Part shown: in pieces, positions 1 through 7,285 of the stretch | Numbering within the stretch: position 1 is the stretch's first letter | Layout: every line of letters starts with the position of its first letter | Sequence record: NC_009760.1 | Reading direction: 5' to 3' (one strand) | Length of the DNA stretch: 64,000 bases | Translations under genes and position numbers: made by a program | Notes under the pieces: model-generated | What the model was told of the DNA's origin: nothing | Databases searched by the model: none | The model's input: only the letters and a program-made list of their open reading frames with translations

Positions 1-353
1 GGAGCAGGGAGAGAAAGGGACGAAAAGAAAACTATTTCGCCCATATACGTTCGTCGATTGCCCGATGATGCGTGCGAACGCAATCATATAAAGCATCAAG
101 CGTGCGAATGCGTTTCGAATGAAAGCAATGCGACGCAAAATGAAGATGCCATATATACAGGGACGACGAACCATAACTGGTAGAGCGTACCAGTTGTACA
201 AGAACGACGCTGGGTGGTGAACGGCTCGCTCTGCTCGCCGTCGTAGGTCACTGCGTTTCCCCACAACACCCTTCCTGCGAATACGCCGGAGGCGGGGTAT
301 CACACAAGCAGAACCTCTATTGACTGCGAACACGGTCTGAATGTACGACCGTA

Positions 354-1100
354 CTACGCTCCACATCTTAACCATGCATCTCTTATTTCATAACCGGTTG
401 GCTGACGTTCATTGTTGCTAACGAACAACTCACGAAATTCGACCAACCACGATGCATCTACTGTTCCGCTGTATCTTGTCACTAGAGTATTTTCCTTACG
501 CTCCGCAGGACTCACATTCTCCTGCTTCGGTTTATTATGCGTCTGTACTCGCTTACGCTCCTCTTGTTTTACTCGTACGGATGCTGGCATCTTACGTACT
601 CGGACTAACGCTTTTACTATGCGTGCAATGTCACCATGCACTCCATTACTGAATGGCTTAAATGAATCAATCGCTGACTGTATCATCATTGGTTTCATAG
701 GTTTCCCATCCACCTTTATATATGGTCGTGCATCAGATGGATTCCATCCAATCTTAACTGTTACTCCCTTTTGTTTGAAGACAACGCCCAGCTCGTTGCT
801 ACGCACATACTCAAATACTTTCGTGTACGCTGGTGCTGTCTTTTCTTCCGGCTCGCTGTCGCTCGCCGAATCATATCCTAGTTCCTCTGCTACATAGAAG
901 TCATTCAGACACTCTATGCAAATGTGTCCATCATCCTCTGTGTAACATAGGTGACGAGACTCCTCATTGCAGAGTTCACATTGCTCGCTGACGCTCGCAA
1001 GTTTTACAGTCATCACTTTATAACTACGACCAAGTTTCTTTGTTTTCCAATCCATCCATAATACATATCTCTCTTCATTCACTACTGTTAAATTCATCAT
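354..1100 (-). CDS. Hypothetical early protein (248 aa) with Cys/His cluster, possible Zn finger
   Basis: GGAGG RBS 8 nt before ATG at 1100 (the track start at 1115 overlaps the RBS). Motif CELC-x6-LC-x6-HICIEC. Confidence 0.8.
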   Translation of the reverse strand: MMNLTVVNEERYVLWMDWKTKKLGRSYKVMTVKLASVSEQCELCNEESRHLCYTEDDGHICIECLNDFYVAEELGYDSASDSEPEEKTAPAYTKVFEYVRSNELGVVFKQKGVTVKIGWNPSDARPYIKVDGKPMKPMMIQSAIDSFKPFSNGVHGDIARIVKALVRVRKMPASVRVKQEERKRVQTHNKPKQENVSPAERKENTLVTRYSGTVDASWLVEFRELFVSNNERQPTGYEIRDAWLRCGA

Positions 1101-1139
1101 TTTAAATTCCTCCAATTTATATGTTTTTTGTTTAAAGCC

Positions 1140-1830
1140 GGGGACTCATTAGTGGTAGCCTGTTCAGGGCATCTCAGACTTCACCAATCGTGTCCATGAA
1201 GTTGCTAGGTCAACTGACACTGACTGAACAACTCCGTAGAGATTGTTTTCACATGTGCGTGCGTTATGTCTTCTAGTCATGACGTACTCTCCCTCGACCA
1301 AGAGTTAGAGTCGGCGTCCTAGCTTCTTGCACTTCCCTCGAAAGGGTGGCTATCCACTAGGGGCGTCCTCCATTCTTGTTAGTACGGAGAGCAGCAATGA
1401 CATACATGATGTCACGCAATGAGGACTCGTGTTGTCTTAACCCGAAGCAATCTGTGTCCTCACTGCTTCGGGATGTTAGCTGGTTGCTAAGTTTCCTAGT
1501 ACCATGTTTGTCCGCTACCCTATCGCGCTATCACTGATTACGGAGTGACCATCCGGGATACTGAATAAATGCTACATATATCTCACGACATACTGCATTG
1601 CCTGATTCCTCAACAGATCTCTTGTTTATACCGACGTTGATTCAGACGTCGAGGCATACTTGTGAAACGGTGGATGCTTACCGTGCCTGATAGGTCGCTA
1701 CTCGTCTACTGTTATGAGTAACAACGATGTTAGGTCTGATGATTCTACGAGGGCAACCAACCCTCCTCTCTGGTGTAGTTATAGTTGACACCATAAGAGA
1801 CACGATATGCTCATGTCTCCTAGCTACCAA
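1140..1830 (-). ncRNA. Candidate large structured non-coding RNA or long structured leader (~700 nt)
   Basis: No ORF of 60 aa or more on either strand. About 13 hairpins found by eye. Most extend by G-U pairs on the minus strand, and two carry UNCG loops (cUACGg at 1235-1238, UUCG at 1339-1342). No family assigned. Confidence 0.55.
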
Positions 1831-1835
1831 CTATA

Positions 1836-3488
1836 TTACTGACGACCTAACAACATAGCTTCTAACTGTGTATTTAACGCTTCTTCATCTCCTGTCTCAT
1901 GGAATAGTGCCATCGCATCACACAATGGTGTTGATACTAACTTCTCTGCTGTCATTCTTAATACGCCGTTGTCATCGAAGTCTACATCAGCTACTTGTTC
2001 ATGATTGTTGTACGGCCATAACACTAAGTCTTTTGATACGAAGCCACTGTTCATCATGTTCTCTTTTGTATATACGGTGTATCCTCTCTTACGTAATGTA
2101 TCAGCAACGATTTCCACACTGCCTTTATACTCAACACGACCTGTATATAACTCTTCAATGAATAAGGAATGATCTTCACCAATGCGGATTAAGAATCTAC
2201 CACCCCATCTGTTTTCACCTTCATCGAAATAGCCAACGATTGTCGCACCGGATACATTACCCAACACACCGATGTTGTTGTCATTCACCTTACCTAGTTC
2301 CCACTTCATACATGACGTCCACTCCTTATCTGTTGATACACGTAGTAGATCATCCTTCATACCACTGAACTTCACATGACCTGTCTTCTTCGTATTACGT
2401 GTTTCTACAATGTGTTTTACTTTGCCTAATGGAATACGAATGTCATCACCCAATATTTCCATCACTTGCGGAAACTCTTTTTCAATTCTGTTGATATACT
2501 TCACGACGCTGATCTTTCTGCCATCATCTAGTTGTACCTTGTTCTCCATGAAATCATCCTCATCTAATCGTTGTAATCGTAATAGTCTCATTTGGAATAT
2601 TACTGTGTGTTTGTGTAATGGATTCTCATAATCGACACGCAATGCACTTGATACATCTCGCAATGCTGAATGGAACATCTCATGTGAGTGATTGATTAAC
2701 TCAATGTCGAATGAATCTACAAGCAATGGATGTGCTGCTACTTGTTTGTGATTCGCTATCTTCATCATGTGATTGATTAATACTCTTGGATTGTTATCTA
2801 ATCGTGCTAAGTAATACATATCAACCATCATCACATTACCGATGTCGTACTTACCTGTGAATGTCATCTCTCTATCTACGTATGCATACTTCTTAGTTAC
2901 ATAGTTTTGTAGAACACCTTGTTCATATAGATACTCACAATAGTCTCTGCTTAACTTGTATTCATGTCCGAGTTTGAATCCATACTTCTTCGCACATAAT
3001 GATGCTCTGATATAACCTGTTGGTTCGAACTTGAGTGGACGAATGATACGTTGTTTGAATCCAATCTCTGCTGGTTCTGTGATAACAACCTTGCCGTCGT
3101 AGTAACATGCAGTGATGTTAATGTCGAAGTCCTCTTGTACATACTGACGAATATCATCTGTGTTCACCATCATGATCTCTACACGATACTTACCTATCGT
3201 ACCTTTTAATACTGATACAATTTTACTGATCTCAATGACACGTACTGATTCATCATCATCTTCTACTGTGATACTTGGACGTTCTCTGATTACCTCGCTG
3301 AACATAAAGCCCTTGCTTAATACGTGATATAATACCTCTGACTTACATGCGTCGGATGTAGATACGAACACATCAATGTCATTAGGTTCTTTACCCATCA
3401 ATGCATCTAATACACATCCACCTGCGATAATACCTTTGAAACCTTTTACCACTTTGTATACTTCTTTAATACCTGTACTTGCTGTCAT
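1836..3488 (-). CDS. Nucleotidyltransferase (poly(A) polymerase/CCA-adding class II-like head domain) fused to unknown C-terminal domain, 550 aa
   Basis: IAGGCVLDALMGKEPNDIDV gives GG plus D37-x-D39. QEDFDIN corresponds to RRDFTIN, and EPTGYIRA corresponds to EDPLRILRA. RBS AAAGGAG. Confidence 0.8.
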   Translation of the reverse strand: MTASTGIKEVYKVVKGFKGIIAGGCVLDALMGKEPNDIDVFVSTSDACKSEVLYHVLSKGFMFSEVIRERPSITVEDDDESVRVIEISKIVSVLKGTIGKYRVEIMMVNTDDIRQYVQEDFDINITACYYDGKVVITEPAEIGFKQRIIRPLKFEPTGYIRASLCAKKYGFKLGHEYKLSRDYCEYLYEQGVLQNYVTKKYAYVDREMTFTGKYDIGNVMMVDMYYLARLDNNPRVLINHMMKIANHKQVAAHPLLVDSFDIELINHSHEMFHSALRDVSSALRVDYENPLHKHTVIFQMRLLRLQRLDEDDFMENKVQLDDGRKISVVKYINRIEKEFPQVMEILGDDIRIPLGKVKHIVETRNTKKTGHVKFSGMKDDLLRVSTDKEWTSCMKWELGKVNDNNIGVLGNVSGATIVGYFDEGENRWGGRFLIRIGEDHSLFIEELYTGRVEYKGSVEIVADTLRKRGYTVYTKENMMNSGFVSKDLVLWPYNNHEQVADVDFDDNGVLRMTAEKLVSTPLCDAMALFHETGDEEALNTQLEAMLLGRQ

Positions 3489-3510
3489 GTTTATTCTCTC
3501 CTTTTAATTT

Positions 3511-3539
3511 AAATAAGGAGCCGAGATATACCCGACTCC
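3511..3539 (-). terminator. Intrinsic terminator
   Basis: Minus strand GGAGUCGGG-UAUAU-CUCGGCUCC (9 bp with two G-U pairs) followed by UUAUUU, just after the stop at 3551. Confidence 0.7.
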
Positions 3540-3550
3540 GATGATTGTTA

Positions 3551-4225
3551 TTATTTATTTAATACTTCTGCTACTTTCAGTTTCCATACACCTCTTGTTG
3601 GCTTACCTTGTTTACCTAAGTCTCTCATGTATGCTTGATACCCACTGTTGAACTTACTACCTACCTTCTTGAACTTGTTCGCTGCATATACTTCTGCACC
3701 AATCTCTTTATGTGCTTCGATGATAAGATTAGAGATTCTTTCATCCATTGCTGATTCATATACTTTAACTTCCTTCACTTCCTCTTCTTCTTCCTGTGGA
3801 GTGATAACAGGCTCTTCTTGTTGTGGCACGATACTTACTTGTCCTTGCATCATACCTTCCACGATACCACGCATGATACCTTGTACTGCATCTGCTAATT
3901 CCTCTTGTACAACTTCTCTTACTGTTGCTCTGATCTCCTCTTTAAACACTGGCATTACATCCTCTCTAACTGTTTTGATGATTGTATTCTGTACGTTGTT
4001 TGCCCACATTTGTGTTAGTGTCCCAATACTATCACGAGCGATAACAGCGAATATATCCTCTGTTGATACTGGCTTCTTCTTAATAGTTGATACGATTTCT
4101 TTTGCTACTTCCATTTCAGTTTTCTGTTTTAACTTACCTGCACGAATGATTTCTTCATCACGCTTGTTTGCACCATAACGTTTATTCCATCTGTCTAACC
4201 CTGATTGTGTATTCTTCATAGTCAT
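3551..4225 (-). CDS. Hypothetical protein, 224 aa, helical
   Basis: Long ORF on the coding strand with AGGAGG upstream. Start overlaps the previous stop. Confidence 0.8.
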   Translation of the reverse strand: MTMKNTQSGLDRWNKRYGANKRDEEIIRAGKLKQKTEMEVAKEIVSTIKKKPVSTEDIFAVIARDSIGTLTQMWANNVQNTIIKTVREDVMPVFKEEIRATVREVVQEELADAVQGIMRGIVEGMMQGQVSIVPQQEEPVITPQEEEEEVKEVKVYESAMDERISNLIIEAHKEIGAEVYAANKFKKVGSKFNSGYQAYMRDLGKQGKPTRGVWKLKVAEVLNK

Positions 4226-4569
4226 TAGATTGTATCCTCCTGTGTAGATGCTGTTTCAGCCATCATCATTATTTGTTCAAACATAATCTCGAATCTTACT
4301 TCACTTCCTCCATTACCTTGTGCATTCAGTCGAATACCATGATGTGCATACATTTGTTTAATAATCTTTGCTTCATTTGTGCTTTTTAATCTTACGTTTG
4401 TTTTGATTCTTGTTACAGTCAATCTGTCGATACCAAGAGATAACATGTACGATACGCAATCTTTTAAATAAGCCTTAGCTTCTTGTTGTTGGTCTAGGAT
4501 TAGCTTTTGTGCTACGTTGTGTGATAATACCCCTTCAATCATTGAGATTGTTTCATTTGACAACTTCAT
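4225..4569 (-). CDS. Hypothetical protein, 114 aa
   Basis: TAATG stop/start coupling at both ends. AAGGA upstream. Confidence 0.8.
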   Translation of the reverse strand: MKLSNETISMIEGVLSHNVAQKLILDQQQEAKAYLKDCVSYMLSLGIDRLTVTRIKTNVRLKSTNEAKIIKQMYAHHGIRLNAQGNGGSEVRFEIMFEQIMMMAETASTQEDTI

Positions 4570-5594
4570 TATTCCTTATCCCCTTTACTAATTAGTTCAC
4601 TTGTTGCACGTAATGTTCCTGATGCTAAATCCACTCCTGCATGACCTACTTCTCCGCCTAGCTTGATAACTGTTCTACCGGCACGTTCTGTTACATTCAA
4701 TACTTCTCTTGTTAAGCCGAGTGCAGATTCTAATACACTGTTTAATAATTGTGTTCCTCTGTCTACACCTGCATGACCGTACTTATCTACTACAGCAGCT
4801 CCTTTCAATAGCCCTTGTGCGGCACTTAATGTTAAACCTTTGTACTTCGTTCTGATTAATTCCTGTACATCACCTCCCTTCAATGCATGTAATTTCTCTT
4901 CCACTGAACGGTACTCTAATACTAGTTCGTTGTACTTTTGAGGCTTAGTGATATTCTTGTTCATCTCTTGTTGAATATGACCTAGTTGTTTATCTAGCCC
5001 ATCAATGACCTTTTGCTTATCCCCTTCTGTTAATACCAATTCCTGTACTGCTTCTTCTACTACCTGTATGCTATCCTCTGCTACTGCCTGTGCTGTTGCA
5101 TCTGTTACTTGTTGCATCTTCTCTGCTGCCATAGCCAATACTTCTTGTTCTTTCTTAGCTAGTGCTTGTTTCGTTAACTCTCTATGCTGTGCTGTTAGTT
5201 CTTCCTGCATTGCTTTAACCTCTTCCTCTGTGTATACCTTACCTTCTGTTGTTGCTGCTACTTGTTCTTTAGCCATGTTCATTACCTCCATTTGTTGTTG
5301 TATTGCAGTGAATTGATTGATGATCTCTTTCAGTATCTCTGTACGCATACCCATGTTGACGTTAGCACCTAAGTTGTTAGCCTGTTGTACTAGTGATAAT
5401 CGTTGACTATGCATTACTGTTACTCGTTGATATAGCTTGATGATGTTCTCTTTCTTTGTTCTATCACCTTGATACTCTACTAATTGTTTTTCTGCTACTA
5501 CCTTGATGTTTAAGCCCATATCCTTACATAGCGCCCCTGTAATACGGTTAATATCCTTTACTGTCATACCTTCGATTGTTTTTAAGTCTGTCAT
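4569..5594 (-). CDS. Hypothetical coiled-coil protein, 341 aa
   Basis: AAAGGAG RBS. Long Q/E/A/K-rich heptad-like central region. Confidence 0.8.
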   Translation of the reverse strand: MTDLKTIEGMTVKDINRITGALCKDMGLNIKVVAEKQLVEYQGDRTKKENIIKLYQRVTVMHSQRLSLVQQANNLGANVNMGMRTEILKEIINQFTAIQQQMEVMNMAKEQVAATTEGKVYTEEEVKAMQEELTAQHRELTKQALAKKEQEVLAMAAEKMQQVTDATAQAVAEDSIQVVEEAVQELVLTEGDKQKVIDGLDKQLGHIQQEMNKNITKPQKYNELVLEYRSVEEKLHALKGGDVQELIRTKYKGLTLSAAQGLLKGAAVVDKYGHAGVDRGTQLLNSVLESALGLTREVLNVTERAGRTVIKLGGEVGHAGVDLASGTLRATSELISKGDKE

Positions 5595-5615
5595 AATAAT
5601 TAGCTCCTTTTATAA

Positions 5616-5762
5616 TTAGTTGTTTTTGTTTTTATTGATTAACTCACCTAGTGTTGGTGCTAGTTTAATACCTTGTTTCTTTTTGACTATGCTAGTTGAT
5701 ACCTTACCGATACCTGCTTTCTCCACTGTGTTAATGAATGTAACTACTGCTCTCTTCTTCAT
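5616..5762 (-). CDS. Small basic protein, 48 aa (not in ORF track)
   Basis: GGAGGAG RBS 6 nt before ATG. Translation MKKRAVVTFINTVEKAGIGKVSTSIVKKKQGIKLAPTLGELINKNKNN. Fills the gap between two genes. Confidence 0.7.
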   Translation of the reverse strand: MKKRAVVTFINTVEKAGIGKVSTSIVKKKQGIKLAPTLGELINKNKNN

Positions 5763-5774
5763 ACCTAACTCCTC

Positions 5775-6395
5775 CTATGCAAATAAGTTTTTAATCTTAC
5801 CTAATAGACTACTGAATACACCCTGCTTACCTTCTCCTGGTGGTAATTCATTGTTGTCCTTTAGTCTCTTGATGTAGATGATACGTTTCTCTAACTCAGG
5901 TACTAGATGATGGATACCTAGTCTGATACCCTCTGCTCTCATGATGTTAAGCATTAGTAATACACTCTCCTTTCCACACTGTTGTACTGCATACTCATCA
6001 CACTTAAACTCTTGCTCTGTCACCTCGTGCTGTTCTGTTAGATGTCCAGTAGGATACATGATATGACCTAGTTCATGAGATACTAGTGCTTGTCTTACAT
6101 ACTGGTTACTGTTGAATGATTTATAGTCATATACAATAATCATGTAATCTAAGTAGTATCCTGTTAGTTCAGCGATTTGTTCATTGTCATACACTGTCAT
6201 CATTACAGTTAAGATACGAGTGTCGATGTGGTGCTTCTCGATGTCCTCAATGGATAGTTGATGATGACTTGCTAAGTCTTGTGGTTGTTCGATGATAGCA
6301 ACATGTTCTGTCTTGCCGTTGATGTTTACAGTGAATACTTCTTTCACCGATTGTCTTACTTCCATTACTTCTGCTTGCGTTAGTTTGTCTGTCAT
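5775..6395 (-). CDS. Zinc metallopeptidase-like protein (HExxH; M48 or ImmA/IrrE-like), 206 aa
   Basis: ALVSHELGH followed by EFKCDEYA (E-x-x-x-D third-ligand motif). GGAGG RBS. Confidence 0.7.
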   Translation of the reverse strand: MTDKLTQAEVMEVRQSVKEVFTVNINGKTEHVAIIEQPQDLASHHQLSIEDIEKHHIDTRILTVMMTVYDNEQIAELTGYYLDYMIIVYDYKSFNSNQYVRQALVSHELGHIMYPTGHLTEQHEVTEQEFKCDEYAVQQCGKESVLLMLNIMRAEGIRLGIHHLVPELEKRIIYIKRLKDNNELPPGEGKQGVFSSLLGKIKNLFA

Positions 6396-6554
6396 TTGTC
6401 ATTCCTCCATTAGTTTAGGTGTAGTCAAAAGGGGTGGGGCATGAAACAACCCTATACCCCCATTGCTATATATAAGACGTGGTACTCCCCAAAAATATCT
6501 GTAATTTTTTCGCCTATAGGGAATTTCCATATCGTACCAGCCGACTCCTCTTCT

Positions 6555-6636
6555 TTAGCATGTTGTCGTCGTCGGCTGTAGAATGTTACAAATATGTGCC
6601 GAACTGTTGTCAGAAGACTGTATCCTGTGCTACGCT
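6555..6636 (+). promoter_or_regulatory. Two tandem sigmaA-like promoters
   Basis: TTAGCA-N18-TAGAAT (6555-6584) and TTGTCA-N18-TACGCT with extended TG (6607-6636), upstream of the first rightward gene. Confidence 0.45.
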
Positions 6637-6670
6637 AGGTGCAGGGAGATAATCGAGGAGGACTGTAACA

Positions 6671-7285
6671 ATGGATGGAGATACTATCGGTGGAGAAGAA
6701 TCGTTTGTAGAGGTTAAGGTAGCGATGGATCACGAAGAGAAGAAGTCGTTCATGTCTCGTCCGGGACTGGATGCGAATGGAGTAAGTAGGTTTGTATTAC
6801 CAAACGGTGGAGATATGAATGTCATCGTCCACGGCAGGGTCGCACACGAGGTAGACGAGATTCTATTCGAAGAGAAATTACCTAGTATGATGAAGACGTC
6901 GAATGAAGACGGTACATTAGAAGCGCCGATAAAAGGTTGTATGACTACAATCTTAGATGGCTCTCACGATCAGATACGTGATGATATTCGTCAAGGCATT
7001 ATGCGTACCGAAGAAACGATTCTCGGTAAACCGGACTCTATACTTGTCGCTGACTTTTGGGTAGAAGAAACTCAAAGAGGTTATCGTGCATCATTCCGTG
7101 ATGTGAAGTTTACGAAAGTAAAGAATGATTTCAATCGTATGGATATCGTATTGACGAATCGTTTCTTCTTTGAAGCGCAGGACGTTGTGTTTACGCCGTA
7201 CAAACGTGATGAAACTGGATGTGTCTCCGTAGCGTTAAGCAAGGAGACAGAAGAAAGATTAAAGAGGATGGTGCTAAATGGCTAA
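6671..7285 (+). CDS. Hypothetical protein, 204 aa
   Basis: GAGGAGG RBS. First rightward ORF, overlapping the next start. Confidence 0.8.
   Translation: MDGDTIGGEESFVEVKVAMDHEEKKSFMSRPGLDANGVSRFVLPNGGDMNVIVHGRVAHEVDEILFEEKLPSMMKTSNEDGTLEAPIKGCMTTILDGSHDQIRDDIRQGIMRTEETILGKPDSILVADFWVEETQRGYRASFRDVKFTKVKNDFNRMDIVLTNRFFFEAQDVVFTPYKRDETGCVSVALSKETEERLKRMVLNG

Follow-up and report, generated by a model that had tools for sequence, protein, structure and literature searches.

A previously undescribed structured RNA between gp102 and gp101 of Bacillus phage 0305phi8-36, in a three-part cassette that is only partly real

A stretch of 64,000 nucleotides (nt) from the record NC_009760.1, hereafter the window, was analyzed for the genes gp102 and gp101 and the long spacer that lies between them. 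Bases 1-6000 of the window are 100% identical to bases 1-6000 of the record of Bacillus phage 0305phi8-36, whose host is B. thuringiensis, and the gp102-spacer-gp101 cassette is located inside the left terminal repeat of the genome (1-6479; 6479 bp), a second copy of which is present at the right end. All genes from gp107 to gp101 are carried on the minus strand, and the right-end copy runs on into gp100, gp99, and further genes; gp99, whose annotation reads hypothetical DNA-directed RNA polymerase, resembles RNA-dependent RNA polymerases (RdRP-like; Pfam PF05183). Our literature search found no published mention of gp101, gp102, or any RNA at the locus. An earlier interpretation, made from the DNA letters without database searches (the sequence-only reading), had proposed that a nucleotidyltransferase, a structured RNA, and a Cys/His-rich protein encoded side by side here may form one functional unit. 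The features of the locus are listed in Table 1.

The minimum free energy of the 720-nt spacer was compared with that of shuffled sequences, yielding z = -5.0 for the minus strand and -2.45 for the plus strand. In a sliding fold scan, local z values ranged from -1.8 to -3.8 across the spacer and from about 0 to +1.7 within gp102. The open reading frames (ORFs) of the spacer have no ATG start, and 4-nt and 2-nt indels in the related phage sequence L027 interrupt them; small genes were therefore rejected. Searches for known elements were negative. With Rfam 15, no match reached the gathering score in the 64-kb window, none was obtained at E ≤ 5 in 1-2000, and the corresponding spacers of L027 and L023 gave none at E ≤ 1; the families covered include tRNA, tmRNA, RNase P, 6S, group I/II introns, GOLLD, ROOL, OLE, HEARO, ribozymes, and riboswitches. 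ARAGORN found no tRNA inside 1116-1835 at the default or the 85% threshold; the "tRNAs" called at 70% were rejected as implausible, such calls being made throughout, even in coding DNA. Neither a tRNA-like nor any other defined 3′ end was found in the spacer RNA, and direct repeats or iterons were not found in the spacer either. A DNA similarity search with the spacer against phage and plasmid collections returned only 0305phi8-36 itself, and a 21-mer of the core (see below) retrieved only this phage from viral contigs and nothing from genome contigs. Six further viral contigs picked up by a degenerate three-block pattern were discarded as chance hits, none of which fits the covariance model. 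The spacer is a real structured RNA that is new to Rfam; the sequence-only reading, which had taken it for one, is borne out by the z value of -5.0 and by the covariation described below.

Cluster look-ups showed that public assemblies contain gp101 and gp102 in about 20 close variants, and four independent close lineages (L002, L015, L016-18, and L019-21) were compared with 0305phi8-36. Pooled over five lineages, 5 of the 720 spacer sites are variable, with 1 to 3 differences from 0305phi8-36 per lineage. In the same lineages, variable third codon positions amount to 12/249 in gp101 (4.8%), 38/225 in gp103, and 133/551 in gp102 (24%), and the noncoding stretch 38-353 varies at 26 of 316 sites (8.2%). 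The spacer is about 7-fold less variable than the adjoining gp101 third codon positions (Fisher p = 1e-4), and all comparisons with the individual regions gave p ≤ 1e-4. The conserved block is bounded by the gp102 stop and the gp101 start in four relatives, whatever their mosaic pattern. Among four substitutions in the spacer, one falls in a hairpin loop and two change C-G to U-G; the L015 substitution, at spacer position 27, is in the loop of the hairpin that follows the gp102 stop.

More distant relatives revealed which part of the RNA is held fast. In L027-L031, the gene order is gp107-like, gp105-like, gp104-like, gp103-like, a 692-nt spacer, a gp101 homolog, and an RdRP-like polymerase gene. 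The L027 spacer is homologous to that of 0305phi8-36, occupies the equivalent place, and folds at z = -4.6. In the 5′ half, the two share 40% identity; the value rises to 69% across spacer positions 361-690 and to 83% within 421-553, and the proteins flanking the L027 spacer are 37-56% identical to their 0305phi8-36 counterparts. A covariance model of the 192-nt RNA core, designated R1, scored 238.9 bits in the window, 208.1 in L027, 14.6 in L023 (E 0.023 over 149 kb), and 11.5 in L024, and the matches in L023 and L024 are on the strand of a gp101 homolog and directly upstream of it. The L023 locus, of 53% G+C, is part of a 208-kb metagenome contig; the R1 match falls within an 840-nt gap, the gp101 homolog there is 35% identical, and an RdRP-like gene lies downstream. 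With a second model, R2, made from the 3′ tail, L023 was not recovered.

In a four-row alignment of R1, whose L023 row was fitted by the model and thereby biases pair counts toward the structure, compensatory (both-side) changes occur in 21 of 56 pairs. Paired cells make up 97.5% of this alignment versus 34-45% with slid partners, and 0 of 500 shuffles reached the observed value. Both-side changes affect 8/12 pairs of helix 1, 6/9 pairs of the closing helix of the multi-helix domain, which has a distinct sequence in each lineage, and 5/10 pairs of helix 4. Many pairs of R1 are G-U, compatible with the gene strand only, and short single-stranded motifs of the core recur in all three lineages. 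A pseudoknot in the core is possible, as judged from complementary bases: one compensatory C-G to U-A change distinguishes 0305phi8-36 from L027, and the pairing is not clearly retained in L023.

Table 1. Features of the gp102-gp101 locus (window coordinates)
Feature	Position	Strand	Description
Terminator-like hairpin between gp103 and gp102	3517-3539	-	9-bp stem, 6 G-C pairs, 5-nt loop
gp102, 550 aa	1836-3488	-	Class II nucleotidyltransferase
ORF-poor spacer, 720 nt, candidate structured RNA	1116-1835	-	Fold z, conservation, distant homologs
First hairpin 3′ of gp102 stop	1797-1819	-	8-bp stem, 7-nt loop, then UUAU
Conserved 3′ domain of RNA, spacer positions 361-690	1146-1475	-	Identity to L027
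RNA core (covariance model R1)	1283-1474	-	Hairpin, linker, second hairpin, closed multi-helix domain
Core hairpin, helix 1	1441-1472	-	Stem sequence differs in each of three lineages
Possible pseudoknot	1421-1461	-	Helix 1 loop bases 1456-1461 complementary to 1421-1426
Closed multi-helix domain, helices 3-6 of R1	1285-1393	-	Double changes in helices
gp101 ribosome-binding site, strong	1109-1113	-	GGAGG
gp101, 248 aa	354-1100	-	CxxC...CxxC segment and conserved core
Terminal-repeat part of 774-nt conserved noncoding stretch	1-353	-	Neighbor, outside the cassette

Whether the three parts stay together was examined in the same relatives. Throughout the 0305phi8-36 clade, the RNA, the transferase gene, and gp101 are adjacent and co-oriented, and this triple was seen only there. 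L027 and L023 (fetched DNA) possess the RNA and a gp101 homolog but no transferase gene; in L027, the RNA comes after the gp103-like gene with no such gene intervening. An RNA, then a gp101 homolog, then an RdRP-like polymerase gene is the succession common to 0305phi8-36, L027, and L023. In the loci of distant gp102 homologs (L008-L014), only 77-270 nt follow the transferase gene. L010 and L012 encode a clear homolog of the gp101 core after their gp102 homolog (E ~1e-25), at gaps of 77 and 150 nt, and R1 gave no match in either locus. In four more loci with a gp102 homolog, the next gene is cysteine-rich and has a faint likeness to the gp101 core (hhalign E 0.012). Hence the pairs RNA plus gp101 and transferase plus gp101 each recur, while RNA plus transferase is confined to the 0305phi8-36 clade: the parts are unlinked in some relatives but not in all, and the idea of one obligate unit is not supported by L027 and L023, which lack the transferase, or by L010 and L012, which lack the RNA.

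The boundaries of the cassette agree in most respects with the sequence-only reading. The transferase gene, the RNA, and gp101 are all on one strand, the minus strand, and the first hairpin indeed starts about 16 nt past the gp102 stop; a weak terminator is one possible role for it, the 5′ limit of the RNA another. The last hairpin had been placed about 30 nt before the gp101 ribosome-binding site, which is approximate: the final well-supported helix ends about 40 nt, and a weak last hairpin about 20 nt, before that site. The terminator-like hairpin between gp103 and gp102, formerly assigned to 3511-3539, exists and has a T-rich tail extending to about 3507; in a scan of 1-7000, it was the sole terminator-like site. 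Its presumed role of separating the block from the early genes is unsupported, since no promoter-like site was found by scanning between this hairpin and the gp102 ribosome-binding site.

Early blocks of distant phages bearing a gp102-like transferase yielded additional observations. In L008, a twister-P1 ribozyme match was found at 1648-1714 on the plus strand (60.6 bits, E 2.6e-11; gathering score 67.2), and L012 has a weak match to a hepatitis delta virus (HDV)-like ribozyme at 4451-4508, also on the plus strand (E 0.029). Both lie inside the early blocks, which makes RNA processing of these operons plausible. The early block of L008 also contains a 624-nt gene-poor gap (1948-2571), which neither R1 nor R2 matches except at a ribosome-binding-site region.

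The N-terminal segment of gp101 is, by its sequence, a zinc-ribbon-like motif for which metal binding is predicted. It has CxxC knuckles at residues 41-44 and 61-64 (segment 41-64, bases 909-980), and the CxxC...CxxC spacing is kept in the proteins P0064-P0068; Pfam zinc-binding families match the segment weakly (E 0.12-0.21). The former description of gp101 as Cys/His-rich thus captured the motif and overstated the richness, as the cysteines are confined to this one 24-residue segment. The rest of the protein is a conserved core (residues ~93-248), which matches no PDB entry or Pfam family. A search with gp101 returned homologs at 41-93% identity, among which the L027 homolog shows 51%; relative to L002, 9 of the 11 differences are synonymous. 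Other gp101 homologs carry a SAP-like domain in place of the N-terminal zinc ribbon. The idea that the RNA tracks the zinc-ribbon type of gp101 was rejected, because L023 has the RNA together with the SAP-like type.

Sequence motifs and a structure model both identify gp102 as a class II nucleotidyltransferase, like CCA-adding enzymes and poly(A) polymerases, in keeping with the earlier assignment. The protein consists of an N-terminal transferase head, a helical middle, and a conserved C-terminal alpha/beta domain at about residues 360-500, the second conserved block in a 14-sequence alignment. Pfam PolyA_pol matches at E 4.8e-4 and 20.9 bits, slightly below the gathering cutoff of 23 bits, and it matches 9 of the 14 gp102 homologs, each weakly; phrog_1614 (nucleotidyltransferase) matches at E 2e-14. 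The top PDB sequence match is a CCA-adding enzyme of solved structure, with which motifs A and B align. Motif A (GG...DxD) and the later acidic motif of class II nucleotidyltransferases are present, and G23, G24, D28, D37, D39, D122, and R161 are invariant across the 14-homolog alignment. HMMER searches of 1.8 billion representatives retrieved shorter transferases and nine relatives of full length, the latter 32-37% identical. An AlphaFold2 (AF2) model built from the alignment reached a predicted local distance difference test (pLDDT) score of 78; the model from the single sequence (pLDDT 32) was not used. All 46 PDB matches found by Foldseek at E ≤ 0.001 are CCA-adding enzymes, tRNA nucleotidyltransferases, or poly(A) polymerases (best E 3.8e-7), and similar matches were obtained against viral structures. 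The likeness is one of the head, the overall template modeling score (TM-score) being 0.2-0.3 and the root mean square deviation outside the head exceeding 20 Å. Pfam scans of gp102 and 13 homologs detected none of the RNA-binding neck, body, or tail domains of CCA-adding enzymes, and domain-wise searches of gp102 found nothing further.

Close relatives of gp102, and P0006 as well, have precomputed matches to Pfam PF26128 (Gad2): such matches exist at E ≤ 1e-5 for P0001, P0036, P0037, P0044, and P0006, and weaker ones for P0002, P0004, and P0007. We regard membership of gp102 in the Gad2 family as likely but not confirmed, because our own local Pfam scan returned no PF26128. Gad2, from SPbeta-like phages, is reported to counter Gabija and to have a nucleotidyltransferase domain by prediction, and inhibition of Gabija has been described only for SPbetaL7 Gad2 and a Brevibacillus prophage homolog (bioRxiv 10.1101/2023.05.01.538930); its mechanism is still unexplained (PMC12904381). 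An antidefense role of gp102 is probable. The four close lineages each differ from the 0305phi8-36 copy of gp102 at 62-144 positions.

Divergence at the locus peaks in this gene. L016-L018 show 88 differences in gp102 and zero in the adjoining gp103 and gp104, making gp102 a divergence hot spot; this pattern suggests allele replacement or diversifying selection. Such divergence is often met in antidefense genes. In most of the distant homologs (P0002-P0005 and P0008-P0010), the C-terminal tail is acidic, contains DP-F, and closes with DLPF or DFPF; it may resemble the C-terminal tip of bacterial single-strand-binding protein. In 0305phi8-36, gp102 does not have the final DLPF or DFPF, and its last ~40 residues are exchanged between close relatives.

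Downstream of gp101, a further noncoding stretch of 774 nt separates this gene from gp100 (right-end copy, record 212049-212822; L040:6550-7323), the gp99 polymerase gene lying beyond. No gene is annotated in the stretch, which along its entire length shares 72% identity with L027:6807-7632. It may be a second conserved noncoding element; this is suspected because the ORFs of relatives in this stretch (172 and 209 aa) are of low complexity and their frame is not conserved. Tandem palindromes of the type GGTAC-N3-GTACC occur at window 160-195 on the minus strand, L027:6969-7020 and 7175-7210, L023:5914-5946, and L012:8819-8860. Their conservation at this place, downstream of gp101, extends to four lineages with protein identities of only 35-51%. 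Repeats with ACGTTATGTC are found near the palindromes. The palindromes, which lie ahead of the polymerase gene, are candidates for protein binding or for small hairpins. At the other end of the repeat, window 6396-6670, a divergent intergenic region that includes the repeat boundary at 6479, is 100% identical to L002, and its flanking genes are 4-7% different.

The RNA was compared with known systems. Like GOLLD and ROOL, it is a noncoding RNA of several hundred nucleotides with many helices in a phage of Firmicutes, its G+C content is above that of its neighbors, and its function cannot be read from the sequence. Unlike them, it matches no Rfam family (E ≤ 5), adjoins no tRNA genes, is fixed directly upstream of one protein gene, and is found in three lineages so far. 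The 5′ leaders of bacterial genes (riboswitches, T-boxes, and ribosomal-protein leaders) share with it the strand of the gene, the place directly upstream, an end near the ribosome-binding site, and conservation of this position, and a leader-type position is observed in 0305phi8-36, L027, and L023/L024. However, the RNA of about 700 nt far exceeds the typical length of such leaders, no terminator/antiterminator or element sequestering the ribosome-binding site was found in it, and no ligand or protein partner is known. As for gp102, it resembles Gad2 in being a protein of a Bacillus phage with a predicted nucleotidyltransferase domain, encoded among early or accessory genes, but Gad2 has about 400 aa by description whereas gp102 has 550 aa and an additional conserved C-terminal domain; tblastn with gp102 found no SPbeta-type phage. 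With class II CCA-adding enzymes and bacterial poly(A) polymerases, gp102 shares the head fold and the GG...DxD and acidic motifs. It differs from them in the PolyA_pol score below the cutoff, the missing matches to body and tail domains, and the low overall TM-score, and, in contrast to what a CCA-adding enzyme would serve, the 64-kb window holds no phage tRNA genes.

Taken together, the reading that we favor, with a probability of roughly 55%, is that the spacer is a minus-strand structured-RNA gene within the early operon of the terminal repeat that most likely works with gp101, gp102 being an independent accessory. The 3′ 330 nt make up the conserved core, which contains, in this order, one hairpin, a possible pseudoknot, another hairpin, and the closed multi-helix domain. 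Its place directly upstream of a gp101-family gene is shared by no fewer than two further jumbo-phage lineages, both distant relatives, and the gene block with the core precedes an RdRP-like polymerase gene wherever it is seen. The RNA may act as a long structured leader controlling gp101 expression, as a binding partner of gp101, or as both. In this arrangement, gp101 would be a carrier of exchangeable N-terminal nucleic-acid-binding modules, either the zinc ribbon or the SAP-like domain, and gp102 an accessory early gene whose gains and losses do not depend on the RNA, the two being neighbors through a shared early-gene location and not through an obligate partnership. A role tied to gp101 is favored because the RNA ends just before gp101 in every lineage that has it, and from this position we infer the link to gp101 function.

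Several points weigh against this reading. The RNA is carried by only three independent lineages, and one of them, L023, provides both the row fitted by the model and a match that is weak when taken alone. We infer, too, that the RNA is transcribed, where it ends, and how it is processed. Neither a terminator between the core and gp101 nor a helix sequestering the ribosome-binding site, or conserved pairing with that site, was found; with no expression platform found, it is the position that speaks for a leader. The gp101-like genes of L010 and L012 have no RNA, so gp101 does not always depend on it; the RNA occurs irrespective of the N-terminal type of gp101, and RNA binding by gp101, whose core has no known fold, is putative. 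For gp102, hmmscan at E ≤ 10 with the protein and its relatives gave no Gad2 match, although the local Pfam copy may lack the model.

Several of these points suit a different role, in which the RNA is cut from an early polycistronic transcript and acts in trans on its own, on a target of the host or the phage. It might, for instance, serve as decoy or sponge for a host RNA-binding protein or a defense nuclease, or regulate an RNA polymerase, and the adjacency to gp101 would be mere synteny. All 720 nt are extremely conserved in the clade, even the 5′ half that is not common to L027, no expression platform was detected ahead of gp101, single-stranded core motifs are kept in three lineages, self-cleaving ribozyme matches occur in the equivalent early block of relatives, and gp101-like genes exist without the RNA. 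On the other hand, the RNA ends 20-40 nt before the gp101 ribosome-binding site in all three lineages with no terminator between, no promoter-like site was found ahead of it, and no target is known; we consider a free-standing RNA less likely than one tied to gp101, yet a serious rival. The single unit of the sequence-only reading, with gp102 tailing or repairing the RNA and gp101 binding it, appears improbable. It accounts for the constant adjacency and common orientation of the three parts in the clade, for an enzyme class that acts on RNA 3′ ends, and for the gp101-like genes, clear or faint, that follow gp102 homologs in L010, L012, and four more loci. It is at odds with the pairs that lack one part (RNA plus gp101 without the transferase in L027/L023 and the reverse in L010/L012), with a fast-evolving gp102 next to a nearly frozen RNA, with the lack of any tRNA-like or other defined 3′ end, and with Pfam scans of gp102 that detected no body or tail domain of the kind with which CCA-adding enzymes bind RNA.

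Two readings dispense with a functional RNA altogether, and the strand asymmetry and the covariation disfavor both. An element acting as DNA, for example an origin of replication, a signal for packaging or injection, or clustered sites for protein binding, would suit the location in the terminal repeat, where the block at the repeat boundary (6396-6670) is likewise fully conserved relative to L002. It is nevertheless very improbable, given that no direct repeats or iterons are present, that folding is strand asymmetric with many G-U pairs, and that compensatory changes keep the pairing as the sequence shifts, which is expected of RNA and not of protein-binding DNA. That the spacer has no function and is a block of recent recombination with chance folds is hardly credible. 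The region is indeed mosaic, and its divergence varies strongly from gene to gene; yet the block has the same gene-bounded limits in four independent relatives with differing mosaics, its variability is about 7-fold below that of gp101 third positions, and the RNA is recognizable, with covariation, where the proteins are only 35-51% identical.

In summary, the folded RNA of the gp102-gp101 gap is previously undescribed, and the proposed unit of three parts holds only in part. Adjacency in a single genome can suggest a cassette that separates into modules once relatives are compared. The 550-aa Gad2-related transferase thereby gains a genomic setting, that of a fast-evolving accessory early gene with a swapped C-terminal tail. 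A bolder and rather unlikely extension of the proposed role with gp101 is that the RNA represents the first of a new class of large phage RNAs and forms a particle with gp101 for host takeover or for a transcription switch to the RdRP-like polymerase, possibly serving as a substrate or cofactor of the Gad2-like transferase in the 0305phi8-36 clade. Large structured phage RNAs are few and their function is mostly unexplained; a new RNA with a fixed protein neighbor in the first-expressed region of a jumbo phage offers a concrete handle on the roles of such RNAs.

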